Positions 45,355 through 53,416 of a stretch of DNA of 64,000 nt are shown one piece after another. Position numbers and translations under genes: made by a program. The DNA comes from Oopsacas minuta. Taxonomy: Eukaryota; Animalia; Porifera. Where the stretch lies: positions 620,001 through 684,000 of the forward strand of contig JAKMXF010000210.1 of the NCBI GenBank assembly GCA_024704765.1, in the 5' to 3' direction. Numbering within the stretch: position 1 is the stretch's first letter; every line of letters starts with the position of its first letter. The notes beneath the pieces are model-generated. The model searched no databases and was not told where the DNA came from. It saw nothing but the letters and a program-made list of their open reading frames with translations.

Positions 45355-45957
45355 ATGCGATATTATTTGCTACTATGCTTGCTATGTGTACTGACCTATC
45401 GAGTCTTATCACATTCGTGTAATTCTGCTCAACAATGTACAGCTACATCCTTAGTACAAAACAGCTTTCTTGTTCAATGTATTGATAATCAATGCGTTTG
45501 CGAGAGCGATTGTTTCTTCTATGATTTTTATGTTAGAGGCAACATAACAGACACTTGTATCATAAATTCAGTCTGCTACTCATATTCCTCAGAGAATGAT
45601 ACCTGTTATCTTATCACTAAGTCTGCTAACAGTGCTGTCATATACGCACTATTCCTCGGCTATGTGGGTGGTGCTAACTATTATATAGGTCGTTATGATC
45701 AAGCAATAATACAAACTATATTATTTCTTATTTTAGTCCCATTCTCTCTACTGTTATGTGCTCTTAACGTTTATTGTTGTAGAGGTCACAAACGAAGATC
45801 CTCTTTAACTATTCGTTGGTTTATCTGTAATTGTATCGGGGTAGTTATTGTTGTGCTACTGAGTGTAGTACTGTTCATTTGGTGGATTGTGGATATATTT
45901 CTGTTTGCTAACAATATGAAGCTGGACGGCAATCAATGCTCTCTCTCAGTCAGCTGA
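45355..45957 (+). CDS. TM2-domain membrane protein with signal peptide and Cys-rich ectodomain
   Basis: LFLGYVGGANYYIGRY (TM2 motif) and WWIVDIFLF...DGN C-terminal motif. Confidence 0.75.
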   Translation: MRYYLLLCLLCVLTYRVLSHSCNSAQQCTATSLVQNSFLVQCIDNQCVCESDCFFYDFYVRGNITDTCIINSVCYSYSSENDTCYLITKSANSAVIYALFLGYVGGANYYIGRYDQAIIQTILFLILVPFSLLLCALNVYCCRGHKRRSSLTIRWFICNCIGVVIVVLLSVVLFIWWIVDIFLFANNMKLDGNQCSLSVS

Positions 45958-46212: not shown

Positions 46213-46794
46213 ATGTCAATTGACACATCTCCTAACCTTATGACAGAATCAGCATCTACTCAACCTCCAGAAGATGCCGCTACCTTAGAGATCAAACAGA
46301 AGATGTTGTCAAACTTCTCAGTGTTTGATCACGAGAATACCAAGACTGTAGATGTTAGTGAGGTGAGGGCTATCGTAGCCTCTCTGGAGCTGTACCCCAC
46401 TCAGACAGAGCTACACGATCTGATAACTGAGATGGAGGAGGAGGAACCTACTGGTTACATACGGTATGATAGGTTTGAACCAGTAAGTGCATTAGCCATA
46501 TAAATGATTGGGTAATATACTTATAGTGTATTATAGGTAGTGTTTAAAGCTGTAGCAGAGAAGCGCTACTCTCCTGCTAGCGAGGAGATCTTATTGAAAG
46601 CATTCGAGACTCTAGACAGAGATAACAGAGGATATCTAACACCTGAGGATATTGAGGCTTACTTCACTGAGGGGGAAGATTCATTTTCTAAAGAAGAATT
46701 AGATGAGTTCTTACACTCAGCAATAGATCCTAATACTGGGAATATTAACTACAGAGATTTTGTACAATCAATGCTAGAACAGGATTCTAACTAA
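46213..46794 (+). CDS. EFCAB2: EF-hand calcium-binding domain protein 2 (DRC8), 2 exons
   Basis: Exons 46213-46482 and 46537-46794. FSVFDHENTKTVDVSEVRAIVASLELYPTQTELHDLITEMEEEEPTGYIRYDRFEP matches the EFCAB2 pattern. Confidence 0.88.
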
Positions 46795-46895
46795 CAGCCT
46801 AATCACTCAGTATATTACTATTAATAACTACACAATGTATAACCTTATTACTAAATGTTATTATGATATTCGTTAGCTGATTGAAATGCTTTAGA

Positions 46896-49800
46896 ATGGA
46901 TGATAAATCTCGGAGTGATAATAAGAACGATAACTTTAAAGTGGGTCTACGAGTTAGACCCCCTCTAACCAAGGAGTCCAATAGCAAAAGATGTGTGCAT
47001 CTGGAGCATGGAGGTGTGTCTGTATTCAGAGGGAACCTGGGATTAGACCTGAGAGGCAGGTCTCCTCAAGCTCTCATTGACGTCACTGACTTAGCAAATC
47101 TACAACCTGACCCTAAGCCTCAGACATTCTTCTATGATAGTTTGTTTGATATAACAGCATTACAGGTATAATAACCGCTATATTATAGCTATACTAGTGT
47201 TATCTATTATTAATTGTAGGAAGAAGTGTATGATACTTGTGCTCAGCCTATTGTCCTATCAGTACTGGAGGGATACAATGGTAGTGTTATAGCATACGGA
47301 CAGACTGGTACTGGTAAGACACACACGATAGAAGGGACATATAGTGAGGAGGGGAGAGGCCTGATCCCTAGGTGTTCTGAGGAGATATTTCATTTTATTC
47401 AGAATAAAGCTGACTCGGATTCTAAGTTCTTAGTAAGTTATCTAAACAAATAATAAAGAACAAACAATTCTATTATTTATTGGTGCTTTCAACTGGCTTC
47501 TTCTTGGCGGTGAGCAATACTCCCGCTACTATAACGAACACTGTAAATCCCTGAGCTGCTACACGGGCCCGCATCATCAAATTTGACTTTCTTTGATCAC
47601 CTTTAACGAACTGATATAATCCATAAGAAAGTGCTGCTACTGTCAGTCCACATCCCAGAGGTACGAAGGGGTTTTCCTTGAGTTTCCTCCAGAGCTTCTC
47701 TCTCCTGGTCTCGGGTCCTGAGTAGATATATTCAGACAGCTGATCAGCAGTTATCTTATCTGAACTCATAGCTAAATAATAAATAGAAATTAGTTTATCA
47801 ACCATAGATAAGAACTATAAATTATAGGTACGGGTCTCCTTCTTGGAAATTTATAACGAGCGTCTATTTGACCTACTGGATCCATCTCATGAAAAGCTAC
47901 GAGTACGCGAGGACGGCTCCAGCTGTACGTTTGTAGAGGGACTGAGTGAACACGTGGTTAAAGGGACCATGGATGTGAACAGACTTCTCAGGAAGGGATC
48001 AACAGCTCGTATAACAGATGGTTCTAAAATGAACAAAGAGAGTAGTCGCAGTCATGCTGTATTCACAATAGTGATAGAGCGATCTGGCGGATCATACAGG
48101 AGTAGAGTAACTATTGGGAAATTACGCTTGGTTGATTTAGCTGGCTCTGAGAGGTGAGAATTGCCGCGAAATAACGCATAGTAATTCAGTTAATTCCCTC
48201 CTAATAGATTTGATATAGAAGCAAAAGACAAACATTTAACAGAGACTAAGAACATCAATACATCTCTCACAACATTCGGTAAAGTAGTTCTAGCCCTGAC
48301 TAGCTCTGGATATCACTCCTACATACCGTACAGAGACAGTAAGCTGACTAGGATCCTACAGGACTCCCTGGGTGGTAACAGCAAGGCCTTCTTAGTATGT
48401 ACAGTCAGTCCTATGACAGATTGCTATCTGGAGACCTTAAGTACTCTAAAATTCGCTCAGCGAGCTAAACATATACAGAATAAAGCTATTGTGAATCAGG
48501 ACTTTACGAAGAAGGCAATGCTCTCTGCCTACGAGAAGGAGATAGCTCGTCTACACAAGGAACTGATCGAGAGCAGAGAGGGATGGGTATCTGCTGGGGA
48601 GTTAGAGAGAGTTAAAGAGGAGAAAGAGAGAGTTGAGTTAGAAAGAGAGGAGGTTATGCATATGCTGGCTAGACAGAACGAGCAGAGTAATCTGAAGGAA
48701 GATGAGAGAGAGAGTCTTGAGAAAAAGATACAGGAATTAGAGCTTCTTGTACTTAAGGTAATATATATCATATAATATAATATATTATTAGTTAAATATT
48801 CTTGTTCAGGGTGGTGATAAGTCTAAAGGGTCGTTAATAACTCCTGAAAGAGAGCTAGTCGATCAGAGACAAGCTCTAGAAGCAGAAAGGAAGAGATTAG
48901 AGGACGAGAGGATAGCATTTAAGCAAGAGAAAGATTCTTTCTTGAGAGCAAGAACAGCTCCTGACGGACAGACGGGATCTGATGAGGAAAATACCGACAT
49001 GACGTCACCATATCGTCGACGTGCTGGCAGTATAAGTTCATCAATCAGTTCATTACGTACTGGTCAGAACACACCAATTATGAGACAGTCTAGATGGTCT
49101 CAAAACTACGCGTCTATGTATCCAGCTGGTCCTGTAATAGGTAGGAGTCACCAAGGATGGGTAGGATATCCTGTAAGTTATCATTAATGCTTATACATTA
49201 CTCATTCTATTGATTATTAACTTTATAGCAGCAAAGAAGCTCTGTAACAGCTCTCTTAGACGCATCGTACAGGAAGTCTCTTATCACATACGTCACTGCT
49301 CTGGCTAATCCTAAGACAGGAATTCCGTGTAAACAGTTCGATAATGGTTTGTCTGTGTTCTCAGGCAGTCATGCAGTCAAATGGTTCATGGATAATATGG
49401 ATGGAGTAGGTAGTGTAAATGCTGCTGCTGACGTAGGACAGAAGTTAATGAATCTACAGGTAATATCCCTGTTCCATTAATTCATAAATAATTATTACTT
49501 ATAACAATTGTATAGGTGTTTATTAGCATGGACGGGACTCTACACTTCCTTCCTTCAGACACCAATTACTACAGATTCTCTCCTGAGTATATTCCTATTC
49601 ATTCATCCTATCCTAGCAGAGAGAGTATACACTCAATAGACAGACCTATCTCCTCAGCTGTTCCTTCTATCAGGTCTAATAAATCCAGGAGCTTATCACC
49701 TGAATCCTATCCTCTGTCAAATATGACATCTGACAACCTATCAACTAACACATACAGTCTCTTGTCTGATACGTCTTCTATTAGTAGTTACTCCTCCATG

Positions 49801-52164
49801 TCCTCAGCTACCAGGATACCTCTAATTGACAGACTGGGTTGGTCTAGTGCCTCTCTTCTACACATGACAGCTTCTCAAGTAAGTACTCTCCTCTATTGGA
49901 TATATACTAATTGTTATATCTATATGTGTGTAGGGTAACCGGAGTCTCTTAAAGAGGTTAGTAGCTACACAGAACGTGAATGAGCTGGATACAGAGAACA
50001 GATCTGCTCTTATGTATGCTTGTGTGGGAGATCAGCTAAAGGCTGCTGAGATATTAATTAAGAAAGGAGCTAATACTAACTTAGTAGATAAGGCAGGTAA
50101 CTCTGCTCTAATCTATGCTGTACAGTTCGGGAGAGATCAGGTTTGTTATTCTGTTTGATGCTCCAAATATTCTTTATAGCTTGTATTAGCTAGTTAAACT
50201 ATTATTGAAGTCATCAGCTGATTCATCTCTCAAGAATAAAGAGGGGAAGAATGCTATTCACATATGTGCAGAGATAGAAGAGAGTCTCAGATGTTTGGAG
50301 TTCTTATGCAAGTAATTATTATTCAGACATATAACTTGTAATAGTCATTCTATACATATCATATATGTATTCTACAGACATTCTAGTGTAAATAGAGCTG
50401 TTAACGAGAGAGACGGTCGTATGCAGTCTCCTCTACATATCAGTGTATTTGCTAACCTCCCTCAACACACCAGGATGCTACTAGTAGCTAGAGCTAAGCT
50501 GTGTATCAGTGATGCTGAGGGTAGGACCCCTCTACACTATGCTATTACAGCTAATTCTCTAATATGTCTTCAAATCATACTAGAGGTTGTTAATAATATT
50601 ATAACTAGTAATTACATTCTCTTTGAATCTGGTTTCTCTATTGAATTTCAGAGTATTCTCATAACATGCATGTTACCTACGTAATAGACATAATTATATT
50701 AATAATCAGTTCAGAGCACTTAGAGGAGTCCAAGTTGTCGGATAGCCTTGAACTGGTCTGGAATCTCCATGAGGGCGTGGAGTGCAAAGTTCACTTCAGG
50801 GAAGTCTTGACCCTGAGTGACCTTGTGGAAGTTCACAAATTGGAAATTATCAAAAGTTCTCTCTTTAATTCTGTCATCAAAATCCTCCATCGTATCCCAT
50901 GGTCCATCTCCTACTCCTACCATAACTATAGATAGCGGATACTTAGAAGCTCGTATTATTGCCGCGATAGTGTCTGCTTCATTTGTTACTTGTCCGTCCG
51001 CTATAATCACCAGGATATGATATGACGTCATACTCCTAACTATCTCTATTGCTTTGTCAATGAGAGGCGCAAAGTTGGTGGGACCAGAGAGGGTAATGTG
51101 TGGAGTAATCTGCTCGTAGATCTTCAAAGTGTCACTCACTCCGTTACACATTCCTCCATCTGTCTTGATGTTAAATACATTATTTCCTTTTGTTCTAGAA
51201 TCCCCGAAACCATAAACAGGTATCATATTATCGTCATCAAATGGTTCTAGCACTAATCCTAGAGTCCGTATAACTTTCTGATATGGGTTGAGGAGAGGAG
51301 GGACTAATGCGTGTAGAGAGTGTCCTCCAAAGGTCTGCTCCCCTTGTGTGTTGTTACTACGTGTATAGTCTATACCAAATATCAGCTGACTAGACTCTAA
51401 GCCCGCCTTACGCATGCTAGCTTGTAAATCCTCAAAACTTCTGTATTTGTCCTGGATCGTTAGAAGAGTGGGTGTAGATTGTTTAGGGGGTTGTTTCTTC
51501 TTCTTCTTGTTAGCAGTCACCAGATACACAATGAATAGAATTAATACGATTATCAGTAGTGTGTCCATGCTTGTATGCTGTAGAATATTTGTTATTATAC
51601 TTTAGAGTCTGATTGCTATTGTATAGTCACACACTCCTATATATTAACATGTTACAGTATGTGTTTATGCCTAATGTAGTAATTCAAGTCAGGATTATTG
51701 TCAATGATTGAATGTAGTAATTCAAGTCAGGAGTATAGTCAATGATTGAATGTAGTTTCGTCATTTATTTACTTAATAGTTAAATAGTTTGTACATTTAT
51801 TTGTTAGAATTGTGGAAGAGATGTAAATATTCCTGATACATCTGGGTGGTCTCCTCTACATCTTGCCTGTCATGACGGTACATCAGAATCTGTACAGCTG
51901 TTGATATCTTCCAAATATTGTGATGTCAATCTGTTAGACTTACACTCTGCTTCTCCTCTACACAATTGTGTGTTTGCTAATCGTCCTGACCTCATCAAGA
52001 AACTAATAGAGGCTGGAGCTAACCCTAACTGTCAGGACAAATCTAAGAGAGCTCCCTTACACTATGCCATAGAGAGGGGGTACACTGAATGTGCTCACAT
52101 GTTACAGAAGAGTAACACACCCCTCAAGGGCAAGACCCTGCTACACAACTTAAGAAATCTTTAG
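46896..52164 (+). CDS. Kinesin motor - coiled coil - DEP domain - ankyrin repeat protein, about 1069 aa, 11 exons
   Basis: Exons 46896-47165, 47220-47432, 47828-48153, 48208-48757, 48810-49172, 49229-49459, 49516-49878, 49934-50140, 50190-50311, 50378-50585, 51808-52164. All junctions are GT-AG and phase-compatible (total 3210 nt). Motifs [54 protein letters not shown]: [10 protein letters not shown]...[14 protein letters not shown]...[11 protein letters not shown]. About 9 ankyrin repeats. Confidence 0.8.
47473..47769 (-). CDS. HIGD2A: HIG1 domain family member (HIGD2A/Rcf1-like), nested antisense in kinesin intron 2
   Basis: [27 protein letters not shown]...[19 protein letters not shown] at 47769; host intron 47433-47827. 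Confidence 0.9.
   Translation of the reverse strand: MSSDKITADQLSEYIYSGPETRREKLWRKLKENPFVPLGCGLTVAALSYGLYQFVKGDQRKSNLMMRARVAAQGFTVFVIVAGVLLTAKKKPVESTNK
50720..51568 (-). CDS. Copine/RGLG-type vWA-only protein with N-terminal membrane anchor, nested antisense in the last kinesin-gene intron
   Basis: [24 protein letters not shown]...[74 protein letters not shown]. Host intron 50586-51807. Confidence 0.88.
   Translation of the reverse strand: MDTLLIIVLILFIVYLVTANKKKKKQPPKQSTPTLLTIQDKYRSFEDLQASMRKAGLESSQLIFGIDYTRSNNTQGEQTFGGHSLHALVPPLLNPYQKVIRTLGLVLEPFDDDNMIPVYGFGDSRTKGNNVFNIKTDGGMCNGVSDTLKIYEQITPHITLSGPTNFAPLIDKAIEIVRSMTSYHILVIIADGQVTNEADTIAAIIRASKYPLSIVMVGVGDGPWDTMEDFDDRIKERTFDNFQFVNFHKVTQGQDFPEVNFALHALMEIPDQFKAIRQLGLL
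51673..51756. repeat. 38-bp tandem repeat, two copies plus 8 nt
   Basis: AATGTAGTAATTCAAGTCAGGATTATTGTCAATGATTG followed by AATGTAGTAATTCAAGTCAGGAGTATAGTCAATGATTG (2 mismatches) and AATGTAGT. Confidence 0.9.
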
Positions 52165-52355: not shown

Positions 52356-52826
52356 CTATTCTGTTATTTGGTTGACGGAATCAGTGATCTTAACAATATC
52401 GTCTAGTATGATAGACATCGCTACAATTAGAGCTCCTATTGCTAGTAGTATCGTGATCAGGGAAGATACTATAGCAGTGTAGGAGATTATCTTTAATATC
52501 TTGGCCCAGTAATGTGTGTTCTCTGAGTCTTTTTTGTTTTCGCTTGATCGCACTAGAAATGCTGCAATGATAGAGAATATCCCCAGACAGGGACAAGCTA
52601 TACAAGCTGATATAGACAGTATCCATACCCAGGGACCAGCAGCTGCTCCCATCCCCACATCGTATAGGTTAGGTGGTAGCATCGTGGGTTGATCCATGGT
52701 AAGCACAACTCCCGGATACATAGCTGACTCTAGGTCAGGGTACTGTAAGGCTGGAGCTGAGGGTCCCGGTGAGGTGTGGTATTCTCCTTCATAGCCGAAA
52801 GCCTCTCTCTCTTTTTCTGTAGCCAT
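52356..52826 (-). CDS. Dispanin/CD225 (IFITM/PRRT-like) membrane protein, copy 2
   Basis: WILSISACIACPCLGIFSIIAAFLVR followed by a second hydrophobic helix. The ATG at 52826 follows TTGTTAG and is preferred over the longer ORF start. Confidence 0.65.
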   Translation of the reverse strand: MATEKEREAFGYEGEYHTSPGPSAPALQYPDLESAMYPGVVLTMDQPTMLPPNLYDVGMGAAAGPWVWILSISACIACPCLGIFSIIAAFLVRSSENKKDSENTHYWAKILKIISYTAIVSSLITILLAIGALIVAMSIILDDIVKITDSVNQITE

Positions 52827-52981
52827 TAAGCTAACAATAGGTAATGAATTGATTAAAGAATACATTGTGTGGCGGTAATACAGTGTATCCCTTAATCCCT
52901 TATATGTAGAGTTCTTGTGCAATCTCTCTTTAATTGAAATGAAACACATCGTAACAAGGGCATGAAGCTTACCTGTAATAC

Positions 52982-53416
52982 TCACTGATCATTATACACT
53001 AAGTTTCGTAGTATAAAAACTATTACAATCACTGCTATTAGACTGAAACATGCTGTGTACAGCACTGTACCCGTTACTATTGCTACTAGAGCAAATCCAC
53101 GTCCGTACTTGACTTTTCTATTTGTTTCGATTGTTTTGCCTTCTTCTGCGTCTTTGCAGGCTGAGAATGTGAAAATGATAGATGGAATTCCACAGGCTAG
53201 ACAGCACACGAATGAGATGCTGGAGAGAATCCAGTCCAGAGTCTTAACTTGAGGTACCTTCTTCTGACGAAAATCGCTCAATCTTACAGCTGCTTCCTGT
53301 TGAGCTTTATAAGGATTGGTGTTTGGAGTGAATCCGTTGTCTTCGTATATCTCATATGGAGGAGGCAATGGGCACTCTTTGTTTGAATATTCGTCCAATT
53401 GCAATTCAGTATTCAT
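52982..53416 (-). CDS. Dispanin/CD225 (IFITM/PRRT-like) membrane protein, copy 1
   Basis: PPPY motif, WILSSISFVCCLACGIPSIIFTFSA, EEGK...A helix, C-terminal TM. Confidence 0.7.
   Translation of the reverse strand: MNTELQLDEYSNKECPLPPPYEIYEDNGFTPNTNPYKAQQEAAVRLSDFRQKKVPQVKTLDWILSSISFVCCLACGIPSIIFTFSACKDAEEGKTIETNRKVKYGRGFALVAIVTGTVLYTACFSLIAVIVIVFILRNLVYNDQ

Follow-up and report, generated by a model that had tools for sequence, protein, structure and literature searches.

In a stretch of 64,000 nucleotides (nt) of the glass sponge Oopsacas minuta genome (contig JAKMXF010000210.1, positions 620,001 to 684,000; hereafter the window, to which all coordinates refer unless another locus is named), we observed a gene at 46896-52164 that encodes a kinesin motor and coiled-coil stalk fused to a DEP domain and a run of ankyrin repeats. 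This kinesin-DEP-ankyrin gene is real and is expressed in O. minuta. We estimate at about 60% the probability that it represents, in O. minuta, a kinesin-17 subfamily of holozoans characterized by a tail of one DEP domain and about nine ankyrin repeats, and that its product is a transport motor whose track or destination is flagellar. Although unusual, the architecture had been recorded before; what is new is the sponge member and the conservation of the DEP-ankyrin tail across the holozoan branch of kinesin-17.

Structure and expression of the kinesin gene

Joining the 11 exon intervals of the gene (Table 1) yielded a frame of 3210 nt and 1069 amino acids (aa) with no internal stop, exactly as had been proposed in a first-pass annotation made from the sequence alone. 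GT..AG ends were found at all 10 introns, most of which measure 49-66 nt. RNA evidence was taken from the contigs of the public run X4, which behaves as RNA of the same organism. These contigs contained joints at nine of the 10 introns, including the three that the first-pass annotation had singled out for checking (49172/49229, 49878/49934 and 50585/51808). The remaining junction, 48757/48810, lies in a stretch masked as repeat, where an X4 contig starts at the acceptor with 63 unplaced letters upstream, a configuration that fits the model without proving it. X4 contig 13 covers 48808-49172 and then 49229-49431, thereby passing from the stalk exon into the DEP exon. Contig depth, a poor measure, ranged from about 640 to 1750 between exon 1 and exon 11 and did not fall past the stalk.

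From this chain of RNA joints, no single contig of which spans the whole gene, we infer one spliced mRNA. The joints link stalk to DEP and DEP to ankyrin repeats, in agreement with the original proposal that motor, coiled coil, DEP and ankyrin repeats belong to a single gene. The gap in coverage by any one contig is what speaks for the alternative that an adjacent kinesin gene and a DEP-ankyrin gene were falsely joined, an artefact to which we give almost no credence given that overlapping joints connect all exon pairs except one and that the same domain order is encoded by single open reading frames (ORFs) in other species, both in transcriptome contigs and in genes without introns.

Table 1. 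Exons of the kinesin-DEP-ankyrin gene, followed by nested and adjoining features. RNA joints are those found in X4 contigs.
Feature	Position	Strand	Content and evidence
Exon 1	46896-47165	+	aa 1-90: start codon, N-terminal part of motor including RVRP; RNA joint 47165/47220
Exon 2	47220-47432	+	aa 91-161: motor, P-loop GQTGTGKT at 47298-47321; Pfam Kinesin E 9.8e-23; RNA joint 47432->47828
Exon 3	47828-48153	+	aa 162-270: switch I NKESSRSH, switch II DLAGSE; Pfam Kinesin E 8.4e-33; RNA joint 48153/48208
Exon 4	48208-48757	+	aa 270-453: end of motor, neck NKAIVNQD, stalk helices 1-2; Pfam Kinesin E 3.3e-30
Exon 5	48810-49172	+	aa 454-574: stalk helix 3, then Ser/Arg-rich disordered linker
Exon 6	49229-49459	+	aa 575-651: DEP helix 1, shortened beta-hairpin, helices 2-3; RNA joint 49459/49516
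Exon 7	49516-49878	+	aa 652-772: last DEP strands (to 49578), Ser-rich linker, first ankyrin cap; RNA joint 49878->49934
Exon 8	49934-50140	+	aa 773-841: ankyrin repeats; Pfam Ank_2 E 1.1e-11; RNA joint 50140/50190
Exon 9	50190-50311	+	aa 842-882: ankyrin repeat; RNA joint 50311->50378
Exon 10	50378-50585	+	aa 882-951: ankyrin repeats; RNA joint 50585/51808, skipping 1222 nt
Exon 11	51808-52164	+	aa 952-1069 and stop: last 3.5 ankyrin repeats; Pfam Ank_2 E 1.4e-23
HIGD (HIG_1_N) gene	47473-47805	-	fills the 395-nt intron 2; Pfam E 3.1e-24; also nested in L001 (7237-7527)
Copine-domain gene	50720-51568	-	nested in intron 10; 282 aa; Pfam Copine E 2.3e-65
EF-hand gene, DRC8/EFCAB2-like	46213-46482, 46537-46794	+	two exons; RNA joint 46482->46537
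AG acceptor, candidate spliced-leader acceptor	46875-46876	+	20 nt before the ATG

The locus is conserved in a second hexactinellid assembly (ENA ERZ25766962), where the syntenic locus L001 contains all 11 exons in order, both genes nested in the introns and the upstream EF-hand gene. Protein identity between the two loci reached 80-83% in motor exons 3-4, 76-78% in the DEP exon and 79-84% in the last two ankyrin exons, and was about 50% in the linkers. Nonsynonymous divergence (dN) ranged from 0.09 to 0.36 across exons, with 0.14 for exon 6 (DEP) and 0.09 for exon 11 (84% identity); because synonymous sites are saturated, no ratio of nonsynonymous to synonymous divergence is given for most exons. 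Furthermore, 46450-51360 is covered at 95-99% likeness by DNA contigs of run X5, which come from another organism ('organism B') more closely related than the source of L001, and all six listed indels relative to the window fall in introns or intergenic spacer, with none in exons.

The deposited O. minuta protein, 'Kinesin-like protein KIF3A' (P0186, 983 aa), is 100% identical to residues 1-951 of our model. It is left unspliced at the donor at 50585, runs 32 codons into intron 10 to a stop near 50681, and lacks exon 11 and thus the last 118 residues. Exon 11 is real: RNA contigs join it to exon 10, its sequence codes for 3.5 canonical ankyrin repeats, and it is among the best-conserved parts relative to L001. 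The 11-exon model is therefore better than the deposited one, and the practical correction is that the public O. minuta protein is both misnamed KIF3A and short of its last 118 residues. Introns 2 and 10 owe their length to the complete opposite-strand gene that lies inside each of them, and the copine-domain gene nested in intron 10 is the likely cause of the loss of exon 11 from the annotation. Another shortened public model within the family is the NCBI protein of the sponge Ephydatia muelleri (P0193, 732 aa), which stops at the start of DEP; the corresponding EukProt model, Em0002g757a (P0357), has 1076 aa.

Domain organization of the protein

Domain searches were run with single exons and with residues 1-951 of P0186, which are identical to the model. 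The exon-by-exon Pfam scan returned Kinesin in exons 2-4, half of a DEP domain in exon 6 and Ank in exons 8-11, so that all three domains named in the first-pass annotation have the support of hidden Markov models. The motor occupies aa 19-359 (PF00225, E 5e-104), which places the protein in the kinesin superfamily, and its P-loop, switch I, switch II and microtubule-binding element are all intact. The neck, NKAIVNQD, lies directly C-terminal of the motor and precedes a region of about 150 residues made of long helices. When AlphaFold2 was run on aa 350-575 as a single sequence, three of these helices were predicted in the stalk (aa 351-394, 399-453 and 465-502), and then a disordered stretch rich in Ser and Arg.

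The DEP domain scored 34.9 bits against PF00610 (aa 616-672), above the gathering score of 32.7. Exon 6 alone scored 27.6 bits, a lower value because an intron splits the domain. An AlphaFold2 model based on a family alignment of 33 sequences had a mean pLDDT of 85.7, with 93-98 in the core, and displayed the three-helix bundle, beta-hairpin arm and C-terminal strands of the DEP fold, the hairpin being shortened. The modelled fold spans 49244-49578, nearly the interval of 49229-49580 given at first. In a Foldseek search of the PDB, the top 46 matches of this model were all DEP-containing proteins (probability 1.00, about 85-118 aligned columns), among them DEPDC5, RGS7, RGS9, pleckstrin, Dishevelled-2, Epac2, P-Rex1, DEPTOR and GPR155, at identities of about 14-25%. 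Score and predicted fold together indicate that the DEP domain is genuine. The domain shares the winged-helix DEP fold of RGS7/RGS9, DEPDC5, pleckstrin, Dishevelled-2, Epac2 and P-Rex1, at only 17-25% identity and with no greater closeness to Dishevelled than to the rest; unlike the Oopsacas protein, none of these carries a motor, and the Oopsacas domain differs from theirs by a 4-residue deletion in the hairpin and the lack of basic residues there. A search with the DEP region of P0007, a family member, returned only four members of the family and was uninformative on the origin of the domain.

In the sponge proteins of clade I (defined below), including that of Oopsacas, the DEP beta-hairpin arm is 4 residues shorter and its basic residues are lost (alignment A2, columns ~41-48; window 49340-49370). 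A second, intronless group of sponge proteins (P0172, P0175, P0051 and P0016) has a deletion of 5-9 residues in the same hairpin. The full, basic hairpin is kept in choanoflagellates, in Pigoraptor and in the second paralogue of homoscleromorph sponges.

Nine ankyrin repeats could be counted at aa 766-1069, in line with the earlier count of about nine; the solenoid that they form is strongly conserved.

Distribution of the kinesin-DEP-ankyrin family

Homologues were sought by an exhaustive HMMER scan with exon 4, and then by a profile search from an alignment of ten full-length matches. The profile was built from choanoflagellate and environmental sequences only, and the 8000 candidates sharing most words were scored. 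About 40 proteins contained Kinesin, DEP and Ank in the same order, and beyond them the scores dropped to plain kinesins. Members were found in the choanoflagellates Salpingoeca rosetta, S. kvevrii, S. urceolata, Monosiga brevicollis, Choanoeca flexa, Mylnosiga fluctuans, Hartaetosiga gracilis, Stephanoeca diplocostata and Didymoeca costata, and in sponges of all four classes (Oscarella pearsei, O. lobularis, Corticium candelabrum, Sycon ciliatum, Amphimedon queenslandica, Halichondria panicea, Ephydatia muelleri and Oopsacas minuta). Environmental or unlabelled assemblies also yielded members, and the filasterean Pigoraptor chileana has a protein with motor and DEP in which ankyrin repeats were not detected. 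The subfamily thus dates at least to the common ancestor of this filasterean, choanoflagellates and animals.

The Oopsacas model is collinear with 10 members, and a DEP-homologous region was present in all 38 other rows of the family, cut short in the shortened entries P0193 and P0017. With motor, stalk, DEP and ankyrin repeats collinear in one polypeptide, the Oopsacas protein belongs to this subfamily, in which choanoflagellates and the four sponge classes share one domain order. No ctenophore, placozoan, cnidarian or bilaterian member was found among the 8000 scored candidates, and no Capsaspora protein was among the listed family matches. Since all sponge classes were recovered by a sponge-free profile, orthologues in other animals would probably have been found. 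The absence of the subfamily from non-sponge animals is therefore probable, although not proven.

The first-pass annotation knew of no characterized kinesin with this architecture. The claim stands as far as function is concerned, as functional data were found for no member, and falls as far as the architecture itself is concerned: besides the roughly 40 database proteins that share it, the Monosiga member was recorded in a supplementary table published in 2010. Literature searches for kinesins with DEP and ankyrin repeats, for choanocyte DEP kinesins and for the accessions or locus names of family members returned nothing.

The motor groups with kinesin-17

We built a tree of 52 motor domains (IQ-TREE, LG+C20) in which the outgroups were limited to a kinesin-3 and one nematode sequence. 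The DEP-ankyrin proteins formed one clade (95/85) that includes both the Oopsacas protein and Monosiga 28628 (P0054). Within it, sponges of all four classes, Oopsacas among them, formed a 100/99 group that is sister to a 100/99 group of choanoflagellates (S. rosetta, S. kvevrii and others), the two together making up clade I (100/99). A second choanoflagellate clade (97/93) contained M. brevicollis, and a second clade of sponge and environmental sequences (94/83) contained Oscarella lobularis and Corticium. Among the environmental members of this last clade are genes without introns; they come from two large assemblies, and L001 belongs to one of these (ERZ25766962). In this tree, the second clades point to an older duplication that would have produced two paralogues before sponges and choanoflagellates split.

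The sister clade of the DEP-ankyrin clade (99/99) contained Tetrahymena XP_001021749 and a Paramecium cluster with XP_001450550/XP_001437606 (cluster-mates of P0249). Wickstead, Gull & Richards (2010) list these three sequences as Kinesin-17 in a supplementary table. The same table lists Monbr_28628 (MONBRDRAFT_28628, XP_001749110) as Kinesin-17 with the architecture KISc-DEP-ANKx6, its only KISc-DEP row. Thus, the motor-domain phylogeny called for in the first-pass annotation recovered a supported clade of DEP-ankyrin motors that includes a published kinesin-17, and the Oopsacas motor groups with published members of that family.

The resemblance to kinesin-17 as it was defined (Wickstead & Gull 2006; Wickstead 2010) lies in this clade shared with Monbr_28628. 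In contrast, most members in the 2010 table are motors without a recognized tail domain, and the DEP-ankyrin tail is confined to holozoans. The Monosiga member is listed with six ankyrin repeats, whereas the Oopsacas protein has nine, together with the shortened DEP hairpin. According to the main text of the 2010 study, kinesin-17 is restricted to cilia- or flagella-building organisms, and functional data were lacking at the time; later papers repeat the argument from distribution. We found no functional study of kinesin-17, in the sense of the Wickstead family, in the literature, where several papers on "kinesin-17" mean KIF17.

The genomic neighborhood of the kinesin gene

The kinesin frame starts 101 nt after the stop of an EF-hand gene on the same strand, a gap that the first-pass annotation had given correctly and that measures 81 nt in L001. 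Exon 1 of this upstream gene had human DRC8 (8j07) as its best solved match, at 70 bits vs 42 for centrin, which agrees with the earlier naming as EFCAB2/DRC8, and exon 2 gave only generic calmodulin-like matches. An Atlas feature search with the upstream EF-hand exon returned generic EF-hand clusters only.

One short X4 RNA contig carries 20 foreign letters, CTTTCATAAAACTAAACTAC, joined at the acceptor at 46875/46876; the window does not contain them. Another glass sponge, Aphrocallistes vastus, is reported to have a trans-spliced leader, and L001 has an acceptor-like tcctag/ctg 7 nt before its kinesin ATG. The 5' end of the kinesin mRNA would thus probably derive from the addition of a spliced leader 20 nt before the ATG, which would allow the gene to be transcribed together with that of DRC8. 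An RNA contig of depth 462 lies over the spacer between the two genes, which says nothing on a polycistronic precursor. Co-transcription with DRC8, suggested in the first-pass annotation from the short gap, has become plausible because of the leader-like sequence at the acceptor and of the linkage conserved in the second hexactinellid assembly, but it is unproven by the contigs. We also observed a two-codon upstream reading frame, ATG CTT TAG, at 46886-46894, past the candidate leader acceptor (46876) and before the main ATG (46896).

A second case of axonemal neighbors was found at the intronless paralogue (P0174, P0175): tektin ORFs lie just downstream of it on the same strand in two assemblies (L003 4947-5237; L005 9704-10057 and 11097-11615).

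Proposed function and alternative readings

The reading that we favor is that of a plus-end-directed, probably dimeric transport motor, as its likeness to N-terminal kinesins, its domain order and its predicted helices suggest. The tail itself would take the place of separate adaptor subunits, with the ankyrin repeats as binding sites for protein cargo and the DEP domain as the anchor to a membrane surface or receptor, a role that DEP has in RGS7/9, Epac and Dishevelled. Less firmly, the track or destination may be the flagellum or its base, because kinesin-17 occurs only in cilia-building organisms and because the hexactinellid paralogues adjoin axonemal genes (DRC8, tektin) on the same strand. 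Glass sponges, choanoflagellates and Pigoraptor are flagellated. The suggestion in the first-pass annotation that the motor is possibly ciliary is therefore plausible given the restriction of its family to cilia-building organisms.

The public name of the protein would instead make it the KIF3A subunit of heterotrimeric kinesin-2, an identity that we consider extremely unlikely. In its favor, the automatic names of NCBI and JGI read 'KIF3A' and 'kinesin family protein 3/17', and a kinesin-2 relative was first entertained since KIF3B/C and OSM-3 head the solved matches of the S. kvevrii orthologue. This candidate was dropped: the ranking of the Oopsacas motor against solved structures is flat, within 247-250 bits (kinesin-1 249.9, KIF15 249.9, KIF3B 247.3), the supposed kinesin-II outgroup is only weakly KIF3-like, and the 2010 table classes the relevant sequences as Kinesin-17. 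The same table gives Monosiga separate Kinesin-2A and 2C genes beside its DEP-ankyrin Kinesin-17, and lists no Kinesin-17 for Nematostella. The Oopsacas protein does share with kinesin-2, the anterograde intraflagellar-transport motors KIF3A/B/C and KIF17/OSM-3, an N-terminal motor, neck and coiled-coil stalk and an occurrence restricted to ciliated organisms. However, its DEP-ankyrin tail bears no resemblance to that of KIF3, and its motor has no specific affinity to kinesin-2. The name is misleading because of this different tail, of the lack of specific motor affinity and of the separate kinesin-2 genes of Monosiga. Automatic public names within the family are in fact inconsistent, as they include KIF3A, kinesin family protein 3/17, KIF11-A and "transcription factor inhibitor ECI-6". 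The first-pass annotation had for its part drawn an analogy with inversin and Dishevelled, under which the motor would be tied to Frizzled/Dishevelled signalling in planar polarity by a DEP domain of the Dishevelled type and by ankyrin repeats like those of inversin. This is also very unlikely and the analogy is not supported. Dishevelled DEP domains do appear among the fold matches, and a Frizzled B gene is reported in O. minuta, but the same genome paper finds no wnt, wntless or dishevelled gene, and a glass-sponge transcriptome study likewise reports Dishevelled as absent. Furthermore, the DEP domains of RGS7/9, DEPDC5 and pleckstrin match as well as or better than that of Dishevelled, and the family also occurs outside animals, in choanoflagellates and a filasterean. 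What the protein has in common with inversin/Diego/ANKRD6 is its series of ankyrin repeats and a possible site of action near cilia. Inversin has N-terminal repeats, IQ motifs and no motor, whereas in the Oopsacas protein the array is C-terminal to a motor, no IQ motif was found and the ankyrin region looks generic. True inversin orthologues are reported as separate genes in sponges and in S. rosetta (glass-sponge transcriptome study). An Atlas search with the ankyrin region, to be read as a lead only, returned generic ankyrin clusters (nearest ANKRD16 and others) and no inversin.

A stronger competitor, although still unlikely, is a general cytoplasmic transport motor, carrying for instance vesicles or organelles with a DEP-binding lipid or receptor, with no special flagellar link and with axonemal neighbors by coincidence. 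Ciliated eumetazoans apparently lack the subfamily, DEP domains and ankyrin repeats are general membrane and cargo adaptors, and gene order in a compact genome need not mirror function. Against such a motor, kinesin-17 is found only in cilia-building organisms, two independent paralogues adjoin axonemal genes, and the sole filasterean match comes from the flagellated Pigoraptor, with no Capsaspora protein listed. Several points nevertheless weigh against the flagellar kinesin-17 motor that we prefer. The motor tree has no reference sequences for most kinesin families, and neither functional nor localization data were found for any family member. Since eumetazoans are ciliated and yet apparently without the subfamily, it cannot be a core ciliary motor. 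The argument from axonemal neighbors is post hoc and concerns two cases; only one short contig shows the leader, and a polycistronic precursor cannot be proven from contigs. Directionality and dimerization are deduced from domain order and predicted helices. Finally, the hairpin arm of the Dishevelled DEP domain contacts the membrane or Frizzled, and judging from the short, non-basic hairpin of the sponge clade, classical lipid or receptor docking by its DEP domain may be altered.

The flagellar kinesin-17 reading can be carried further, and then only as a doubtful speculation: kinesin-17 DEP-ankyrin motors, with a built-in tail for docking on receptors or membranes, could have formed a transport system of the flagellum or collar in the first animals and their unicellular relatives, co-expressed with axonemal genes (DRC8, tektin) and comprising two pre-animal paralogues, a system that only sponges would have retained and that the ancestor of other animals would have lost. 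If true, the family would provide a molecular marker of collar-cell biology and a first functional handle on kinesin-17. Kinesin-17 is among the few ancient kinesin families for which no functional data were found, its ciliary link being one of distribution only. That distribution and the axonemal neighbors make the subfamily a concrete, testable candidate for a flagellar or collar-cell motor, for which the orthologue XP_004988173 of Salpingoeca rosetta, a choanoflagellate cultured in the laboratory, is a practical target.

Nested and flanking genes

The product of the copine-domain gene nested in intron 10 consists of an N-terminal hydrophobic membrane anchor, a lysine run and a copine (vWA) domain, without C2 domains. 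The RNA contig depth of this gene was about 10-fold that of its host kinesin gene, and a 282-aa orthologue lies in the same intron of L001. An X4 contig has a loose end, GTAAGTTTTTT, at 51672, just past the 5' end of this minus-strand gene. The reverse complement of the loose end, AAAAAACTTAC, loosely resembles the end of the leader on the kinesin mRNA, and the loose end may represent a leader on the copine-domain gene.

Upstream of the EF-hand gene, 45355-45957 (+) encodes a Cys-rich protein of 200 aa with a weak match to the TM2 domain, and downstream of the kinesin gene, 52356-53416 (-) holds two adjacent genes for small membrane proteins with weak CD225-like matches; the Pfam scores were below threshold in both regions.

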